A DNA stretch of 63,180 nucleotides, filler included, from Octopus bimaculoides (GCF_001194135.2; 4 parts of 4 records of this genome joined end to end with filler, not necessarily neighbours in it), one strand, 5' to 3'; shown: positions 30,577-30,733, numbered from the whole stretch's first letter. The notes: generated by a model not told the origin, from the letters alone. Numbers and translations are program-made.

Positions 30577-30733
30577 ATGTCTTCCTACACACTTTACAGT
30601 TGTGATACTGATGTTGATGGCGGAGGTGAAGGTTATAGAACAGCACGAGACAATGTAAATGTATGTCGTCTGCTCCTTGCGGCCGCTGGGGTCAGTTTTG
30701 ACGAAAAGACGGTTCCCGAAACAGACTGGTACA
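30577..30733 (+). CDS. First coding exon of a divergent sigma-GST/S-crystallin-family protein (GST N-terminal thioredoxin fold)
   Basis: CAAA-ATG start. MSSYTLYSCDTDVDGGGEGYRTARDNVNVCRLLLAAAGVSFDEKTVPETDWY aligns to S-crystallin [39 protein letters not shown]. 52 codons + 1 nt, then a consensus donor A|GTAAGT at 30734. No stops. Confidence 0.8.

Follow-up and report, generated by a model that had tools for sequence, protein, structure and literature searches.

On chromosome 5 of Octopus bimaculoides, 26-27 GST/S-crystallin genes have been described (PMC9068888), and Arg14 has been described as a contact for glutathione (GSH) (PMC4976375). As a canonical reference we used 11 complete S-crystallin genes from O. 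bimaculoides, O. sinensis and O. vulgaris. The canonical gene starts with an exon 1 of 44 codons plus one base, which ends in ...A/GTAAGT or ...A/GTATGT (the slash marks the junction) and is followed by five exons. Intron 1 was ~1.7-9.5 kb long in these 11 genes, and most canonical genes carried a TATATAA at -104 to -127. Among the loci studied, L001-L003 and L013 (O. bimaculoides) and L007-L010 and L012 (O. sinensis, L012 being the P0018 locus) are not syntenic with the DNA described below; all of these other than L012 were used for gene structure, intron sizes, promoters and HMM controls.

Some irregularities in recorded genes of the family were also seen. In O. sinensis L007, the recorded P0001 range (10001-52103) was found to hold two complete tandem genes, at 10001-20945 and 39823-52088, which lie 19 kb apart. 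The N-termini of P0076 (O. bimaculoides 'S-crystallin SL11-like isoform X1') and P0029 ('LOW QUALITY PROTEIN: S-crystallin 1') resemble, by eye only, a frame-shifted normal exon 1; VVVVQKFVEFCLQPLVSIIPTEGLKSQNG, for example, seems by the same reading by eye to be a normal exon 1 peptide in another frame.

We analysed a stretch of O. bimaculoides DNA of 63,180 nucleotides, filler included (hereafter the window). The piece of it studied here is AT-rich, repeat-rich and eukaryotic, with four internal N gaps. This piece contains an ORF that resembles exon 1 of the S-crystallin genes, and the features of the locus are collected in the table. On direct reading, the start codon was seen in the context ATCAAAATGT, the last sense codon ended at 30732, and one extra base, A, completed the exon and set the junction in phase 1. 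An earlier note on this DNA had reported a stop-free exon with an ATG and a donor, and this reading was confirmed, with 52 sense codons and the extra base directly before the GTAAGT.

Table. Features of the candidate exon and its surroundings (positions in the window)
Feature	Position	Strand	Remarks
Upstream canonical S-crystallin gene: start of its last exon, MTMADMMCYCAL...	14892..14928	+	100% identical to OctvuS4; rest lost in N gap 14929-15450
Conserved proximal upstream block, putative promoter/5' UTR	30447..30576	+	122/129 identical to O. vulgaris, 101/126 to L004
TATAAA	30481..30486	+	96 nt upstream of the ATG; window species only
Exon-1-like ORF	30577..30733	+	52 codons + 1 base, phase 1; peptide MSSYTLYSCDTDVDGGGEGYRTARDNVNVCRLLLAAAGVSFDEKTVPETDWY
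36-nt in-frame insertion, codons 8-19, SCDTDVDGGGEG	30598..30633	+	Gap as placed by all sequence aligners
Splice-donor consensus GTAAGT	30734..30739	+	Phase and A/GTAAGT junction as in canonical S-crystallin exon 1
(TTCC)n/(TTCT)n microsatellite	30762..30855	+	Lies just within the intron-like sequence; position shared by both orthologues

When compared with the canonical exon, the candidate had 12 codons more near its N-terminus and 4 codons fewer between the conserved Trp and the donor. Its 3' end therefore reads W-Y/ in place of W-D-S-M-R-N-K/, with the phase unchanged. C30-R31 of the candidate corresponds to C18-R19 of the canonical exon, and RGRAE is replaced by RDNVN. The column of Arg14 is occupied by Asn26 in the window and in O. 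vulgaris, and by Asp in L004 (one of the contigs described below). The Trp is retained as W51, and the 4 residues after it are missing. The C30-R31 match, the RDNVN reading and the 12-residue acidic/Gly insertion had already been proposed in the earlier note, and these stood; the shortening by 4 codons had not been noted there. The length of the insertion was kept in three species. A reading in which a 40-nt GT..AG mini-intron spans the insertion was rejected, since its excision shifts the reading frame.

The homology of this ORF was evaluated with several searches. A tblastn search of the window with OctvuS4 (PDB 5B7C) gave the candidate ORF at E = 4e-5, and the candidate peptide matched the canonical exon 1 of other S-crystallin loci at E ~1e-6. 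A family HMM, made from 52 sequences (50 S-crystallins, the squid GST sigma and HPGDS), was run on the six-frame translation of the piece of the window, and the candidate ORF was the sole match (E = 1e-3). The Pfam GST_N model gave 14 bits (E = 0.067) over residues 23-46 only, which is below the gathering cut-off of 20.9; the 52 residues of the candidate make up about half of the GST_N domain. Over the 39 codons that could be aligned, the candidate and the canonical exon 1 differed at 44-47% of nucleotides and shared 15-16 of 39 residues, while the canonical paralogues differed among themselves at only 11-21 nucleotides over the whole of exon 1. Judged from these sequence comparisons, the candidate ORF is homologous to exon 1 of the octopus S-crystallins beyond chance, in agreement with the earlier description of an atypical GST/S-crystallin homologue.

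We also examined how the insertion is placed relative to the catalytic Tyr. BLAST, phmmer against alpha GSTs, the family HMM and a 25-sequence MAFFT alignment all put a 12-residue gap between Tyr7 and Tyr20. With the gap placed in this way, the ancestral YTLY-Y motif is split by the insert, Tyr20 falls in the invariant catalytic-Tyr column, and YRTARDNVNVCR matches the canonical segment ungapped. This placement scored 8 BLOSUM62 units above the one that takes Ser for the Tyr, and Tyr20 was invariant in all three orthologues. The insertion is composed of triplet-like runs (GAT-NNT and GGN), and its exact borders are ambiguous between codons 8 and 21; its length was 12 codons in 3 of 3 species (the window, O. 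vulgaris and the species of the Logan contigs). An AlphaFold (AF2) model of the fragment, built from the family alignment and to be used as a guide only, predicted a strand at residues 4-10 (YTLYSCD), a loop at 11-19 and helix alpha1 from Tyr20, at low confidence (mean pLDDT 74, loop ~52). In this model the insertion would form a loop and Ser8-Cys9-Asp10 would close strand beta1.

The earlier note had taken Ser as the equivalent of Tyr8 and had concluded that the catalytic Tyr is absent. The four sequence methods speak against this by assigning Tyr20 to the column, whereas the weak AF2 model lends it some support by putting Ser8 and Cys9 in beta1. As far as the alignments go, the loss of the catalytic Tyr is dependent on the placement of the gap, and for the candidate Tyr a displacement away from the end of beta1 is a better description than a substitution. 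Under either placement, the G-site would depart from its canonical geometry.

An intact orthologous exon was found in O. vulgaris (L014, 44992-45148; OX597818.1:91,470,492-91,470,648, minus strand), 16.5 kb past the last exon of the canonical gene. It encodes MSSYRLYSCETDVNGGGEGYGTARDNVDVCRLLLAAAGVSFDEKTVPETDWC, followed by A/GTAAGT. In O. sinensis, the exon is predicted to lie near 85.354 Mb of CM016863.1. A third copy emerged from an exhaustive HMMER search of 1.84 billion representatives, among which P0083 was the sole true relative (E = 1e-21, 81% identity). The ORF P0083 was called on Logan contigs L004-L006, three sequences of ~1.3 kb each (runs SRR11869384, SRR11869390 and SRR11869391); it is unspliced and runs past the donor into the intron. 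Since these contigs follow window 30052-31214 colinearly through upstream DNA, exon and intron, carry repeats at their ends and differ by ~1% among one another, they look like genomic DNA of a related species. The candidate exon was thus seen to be single-copy, syntenic and intact in three octopod species, with no stop or frameshift in any of the three orthologues. Frameshifts in orthologues had been put forward earlier as the mark of a pseudo-exon, and this mark was absent.

The last canonical gene of a tandem array on the same strand lies ~15.7 kb upstream of the exon, and the spacing is 15.7-16.5 kb when O. vulgaris is included. This upstream neighbour, with which the complete genes of the array end, is orthologous to P0011, the 'S-crystallin 3-like' of O. 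sinensis. We observed no upstream exon of the neighbour in window 11991-14891. The N gap that interrupts its last exon (see the table) may account for the fact that no matching O. bimaculoides protein was found in the search. In O. sinensis, L011 (the P0011 locus) runs colinear with window 12893-24084, shows 84-89% identity to it, and ends ~4.6 kb before the exon. The gapless, 70-kb O. vulgaris L014 is colinear with window 12893-35644, and L011 and L014 together show 84-91% identity to the window. This is similar to the 85-91% seen between the orthologous loci L002 (O. bimaculoides) and L007 (O. sinensis). Such a level of identity, N gaps of variable length like those typical of the O. bimaculoides loci, and a transposon copy matching one in L013 at 96% suggest O. 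bimaculoides, or a source equally distant from O. sinensis.

Several repeats were recorded along the locus. Near-identical copies of a ~440-nt repeat, with identical ORFs, occur at window 22204-22651 and 22942-23382, around the N gap at 22653-22941. The syntenic place in O. vulgaris has only ~400 nt, and other copies of the repeat are 92-96% identical (in L008, and in L013 of O. bimaculoides at 96%). The pair looks like a transposon insertion doubled by gap-closing or by an assembly artefact. A SINE-like repeat was present at window 14686-14807, 21003-21227 and 32942-33008, at the 3' end of the Logan contigs, and in many copies (70-85% identity) in every S-crystallin locus that we fetched. Degenerate ORFs (...YIRETACSIGGRTGGHWRELKAGKSSSVLYQHAQAEHGG...) were found at window 27401-27871 (+) and at L014 41411-41932, a position conserved between the window and O. 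vulgaris; we take them to resemble the GIY-YIG endonuclease-like module of Penelope-type elements. A Pfam scan of the repeat-derived ORFs, these degenerate ORFs included, gave 0 matches.

We looked for the exons that would complete the gene. In the gapless O. vulgaris L014, no other GST/S-crystallin exon was found in the 16 kb upstream or the 25 kb downstream of the orthologous exon; the downstream search runs to the end of L014, ~37-47 kb short of a convergent P0031-type gene. The family HMM recovered the five large exons of the canonical gene on L014 at 52-91 bits and the candidate exon at 15 bits, with no further match at E <= 10 on either strand between 28.6 and 70.0 kb. A tblastn search of L014 with 84 family proteins gave no credible extra match, and neither the HMM nor tblastn found partner exons in window 30734-35700 (which includes one 753-nt gap). 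The ORFs downstream of the orthologous exon were derived from microsatellites or repeats. We discarded a weak exon-2-like match at L014 30136-30195 (E 0.16-0.5), which is placed 15 kb upstream of the exon and whose motif does not occur in the syntenic ORF of the window.

As a control, the same HMM was run on 10 loci (~390 kb) and recovered five exons for each of the 11 complete genes at 41-93 bits, including those of the most divergent paralogues. The canonical exons 1 scored 69-93 bits, as against the 15 bits of the candidate, and no other orphan exon was detected by the HMM in this ~390 kb of sampled cluster sequence. As the candidate exon 1 itself reaches only 15 bits, short partner exons that are equally diverged might escape the HMM.

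The annotation and the protein searches agreed with these results. No O. vulgaris gene model employs the candidate exon, and model P0067 spans the region as an intron; the expectation that the exon would be poorly annotated was therefore borne out. Splicing of the exon onto the distal exon of the P0067 model was tried and rejected, with a stop reached after 3 codons. As for P0067 itself (L014 10001-60023, 50 kb), the model omits two exons of the P0011-type gene, exon 2 and the canonical last one, and its final exon (59799-60023), which is unrelated and was absent from L011, lies 31 kb further downstream. It is probably a chimeric or read-through model and not a real crystallin isoform. A full-length spliced protein with the candidate N-terminus was not found among the 1.84 billion representatives in the HMMER search. 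A product less than 50% identical to the canonical crystallins would form its own representative there. The search yielded only P0083, the unspliced read-through ORF.

Within the regions scanned, neither a GST_C domain (exons 3-6) nor the beta3-beta4-alpha3 part (exon 2), both of which membership of the family would entail, was found. What was observed over 41 kb of O. vulgaris is the set of features expected of a stranded exon: homology to part of a gene, a splice signal, non-coding flanks and the other exons missing. As the probable explanation we favour a solitary exon 1, recently stranded at the end of the array, of an S-crystallin/GST-sigma paralogue that was divergent and once functional. 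A stranded gene fragment is likelier than a new lens protein because no other exons of the gene were found nearby. The exon would once have headed a functional, strongly remodelled paralogue, since an ORF 46% diverged could hardly have stayed open under neutral decay. Its partner exons may have been lost by deletion or rearrangement before the split of the O. bimaculoides-like and O. vulgaris lineages, and the stranded first exon would now be in near-neutral drift. A putative promoter, conserved and containing the ETS-like site, may still drive its transcription, presumably with no GST-fold protein as the product, since 52 residues (beta1-loop-alpha1-beta2) cannot make the domain alone. Counting against a stranded exon are the intact ORF, ATG and donor, the fixed length of the insertion, the conserved upstream block, an exon that is less diverged from the distant orthologue than its flanks are, and the scarcity of changes on the window lineage.

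The earlier note had gone further and inferred a paralogous protein. In line with this, a very divergent and unannotated sigma-GST/S-crystallin paralogue could be live, with the candidate as its first exon and with its other exons >25 kb downstream or too diverged to be recognized. The protein would then have a remodelled G-site, with a 12-residue acidic/Gly beta1-alpha1 loop, Arg14 changed to Asn, a short alpha2, and the Tyr displaced or replaced by Ser. The ORF, the ATG, the phase-1 donor and the insertion length are kept in three species, as this explanation would have it, and the phase of the junction fits the canonical exon 2. The 15.7-16.5 kb to the upstream gene resembles the 19-kb tandem spacing in L007, and the P0067 model indicates that splicing over 31 kb is at least annotated in the region. 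Against these points, no GST-like exon occurs within 25 kb in a gapless assembly, whereas the first introns of the family reach ~9.5 kb at most, no O. vulgaris gene model includes the exon, and the exhaustive HMMER search returned no spliced protein with its N-terminus. We consider a live paralogue rather unlikely. The fuller proposal, of an ancient sigma-GST/S-crystallin lineage alive in octopods, with a first intron of >25 kb and a G-site rebuilt for ligand binding or lens packing and not for GSH conjugation, we consider unlikely.

The divergence between species also bears on whether the exon is still in use. Between the window and the distant (Logan) orthologue, the exon differed at 14.0% of positions and the flanks at 21.4% (Fisher p = 0.04). 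There were 0 indels in the exon where ~3.0 were expected (P = 0.05), and dN/dS was 0.39; all three values favour a live gene. So does the window lineage, on which there was nearly no change (1 in 157 nt, with a flank rate of 2.8%; p = 0.15). The comparison with O. vulgaris points the other way. Here the exon (148/157 identical) differed at 5.7% and the flanks at 7.4% (p = 0.6), dN/dS was 0.59, and in several adjacent non-coding 100-nt windows conservation equalled or exceeded that of the exon. When the distant species served as outgroup, 7 changes fell on the O. vulgaris lineage: 1 synonymous and 6 nonsynonymous, T5R in beta1 among the latter. The exon rate on this lineage was 4.5%, as compared with 3.5% in the flanks. 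The asymmetry of 7 changes versus 1 between the two lineages was not significant (p ~0.08-0.13).

Constraint on the exon is thus hinted at without being demonstrated, and the O. vulgaris lineage shows none. The earlier note had suggested that the insertion and dN/dS be followed in orthologues; the insertion proved to have the same length in three species, but dN/dS of 0.39-0.59 speaks for weak constraint. A codon-position gradient relative to the canonical exons (16/12/25) was rejected as evidence of constraint, as the strongly constrained canonical lineage alone suffices to produce it.

A deeper history of coding is suggested by the distance to the canonical exons. The 46% divergence is several times the neutral distance between the species compared. 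From the flanks we estimated ~0.09 indel events per substitution and a ~50% chance of a stop per 22 substitutions; under 22 random substitutions, the ORF, the ATG and the GT all survived 23% of the time. With 46% divergence and both indels in frame, the ORF would have been mostly under coding constraint over its history.

The upstream region was compared in the same way. An ETS-like GCCGGAAGTGG (CCGGAAGT at 30492-30499) and a block GTGGCTGAGCGTATTA were both present in all three species, and both were absent from the 160 nt upstream of 12 canonical genes. The TATAAA reads TATTATAATTT in O. vulgaris and TATTAACATTT in L004. It was rejected as promoter evidence because it is present in the window species alone, and this lack of conservation also weighs against a live paralogue. 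On the intron side, the microsatellite opens 2.7 kb of pyrimidine-rich, low-complexity DNA in which there is no GST-like exon. The canonical introns 1 were likewise observed to begin TTTC/TTCC-rich.

The conservation of the proximal upstream block is compatible with a live paralogue, and also with an incidental ORF. In the latter case, what is conserved would be a regulatory element where the array ends, or else the region in which a transcript starts, or its first exon, the transcript being read-through or non-coding; the resemblance to exon 1 would persist only as a by-product. Conservation in the 130 nt upstream, where the perfect ETS-like site lies, is no lower than in the ORF (122/129 vs 148/157, O. 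vulgaris), and 25 of the first 27 bases past the junction (93%) are identical in the distant species. The differences by codon position from the distant orthologue are nearly flat (8/5/9), and the well-conserved non-coding windows next to the exon fit equally. However, an exon free of indels, with dN/dS below 1 on the deep branch, is more in keeping with a coding past, and a frame still open at 46% divergence from the canonical exons is left unexplained. An incidental ORF appears improbable.

That the exon is a long-dead pseudo-exon, open by chance in all three species, is quite improbable: at 52 codons the ORF is short, evolution on the O. vulgaris lineage looks neutral, and the joint neutral survival of the other two copies (~0.04-0.1, allowing for the window copy having been chosen as open) is not negligible, but the 44-47% nucleotide divergence from canonical exon 1 is several times the neutral interspecies distance, an ORF would not survive such neutral change at the flank-derived rates, and both indels relative to the canonical genes are multiples of three.

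Together, these results indicate that the description of the exon in the earlier note was largely right, and that its inference of a new crystallin protein finds no support in the O. vulgaris assembly. The note itself had named a lack of downstream GST exons in a better assembly as evidence against its proposal, and over the 25 kb scanned in L014 none was found; with no other GST-like exon in the 16 kb upstream either, no gene model and weak signs of purifying selection, the paralogous protein was not supported. The candidate is probably a gene fragment, unannotated and unusual; birth-and-death evolution has already been described for its tandem family. If the exon is stranded, it provides a small, clean record of that process at the border of the octopus S-crystallin array, in which a remodelled, once-functional paralogue would have been caught shortly after the loss of its body. 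Intact, splice-competent ORFs in tandem arrays need locus-wide checks before genes are called. A live gene would provide the first case, among S-crystallin/GST-sigma proteins, of a large insertion at the catalytic Tyr, and would bear on the loss of catalysis in GSTs recruited as crystallins; even so, it would add just another variant to a family whose loop insertions are already known.

With the octopus lens S-crystallins (OctvuS4, P0011), the candidate shares the M-x-S-Y-T-L start, CR-LL-AAAGV, the invariant Trp, the phase-1 A/GTAAGT junction, the strand, a spacing typical of the array, and the S-crystallin chromosome. It differs from them in that only 15-16 of 39 residues are identical, 12 codons have been added before or around the catalytic Tyr and 4 removed after the Trp, RDNVN stands for RGRAE, the HMM score is 15 and not 69-93 bits, and exons 2-6 were not found within the searched regions. 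Its upstream DNA also differs, with no conserved TATA box and with an ETS-like site that the canonical promoters lack.

The squid GST sigma (PDB 1GSQ/2GSQ) and the vertebrate HPGDS share with it the thioredoxin-like fold start beta1-alpha1-beta2. The ancestral-type Tyr7, Phe41 and D-E-K of the candidate are closer to the squid type and the SL11/SL20 type than to the octopus HYFNH/NDRR type. In contrast to the squid GST sigma and HPGDS, its Arg14 equivalent is Asn, its alpha2 segment is short, its Tyr is parted from beta1 by the insertion, and a C-terminal domain was not found within the searched regions.

For the insertion there is a precedent in S-crystallin 10 of Idiosepius paradoxus (P0062), which has a Gly-rich insertion YFSGKGGGGKAEICR in the same beta1-alpha1 loop, so that the earlier view of length variation as unknown at this site is not quite right. 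The Idiosepius insertion is of only 3 residues, follows Tyr-Phe, and sits within a complete protein of 208 residues.

The candidate resembles stranded exons and unprocessed pseudogene fragments at the edges of arrays in being a single exon with non-coding flanks and no partners, unannotated, and near-neutral on one lineage. Unlike typical stranded exons, it has remained free of disabling mutations in three species and shows hints of constraint on two branches.
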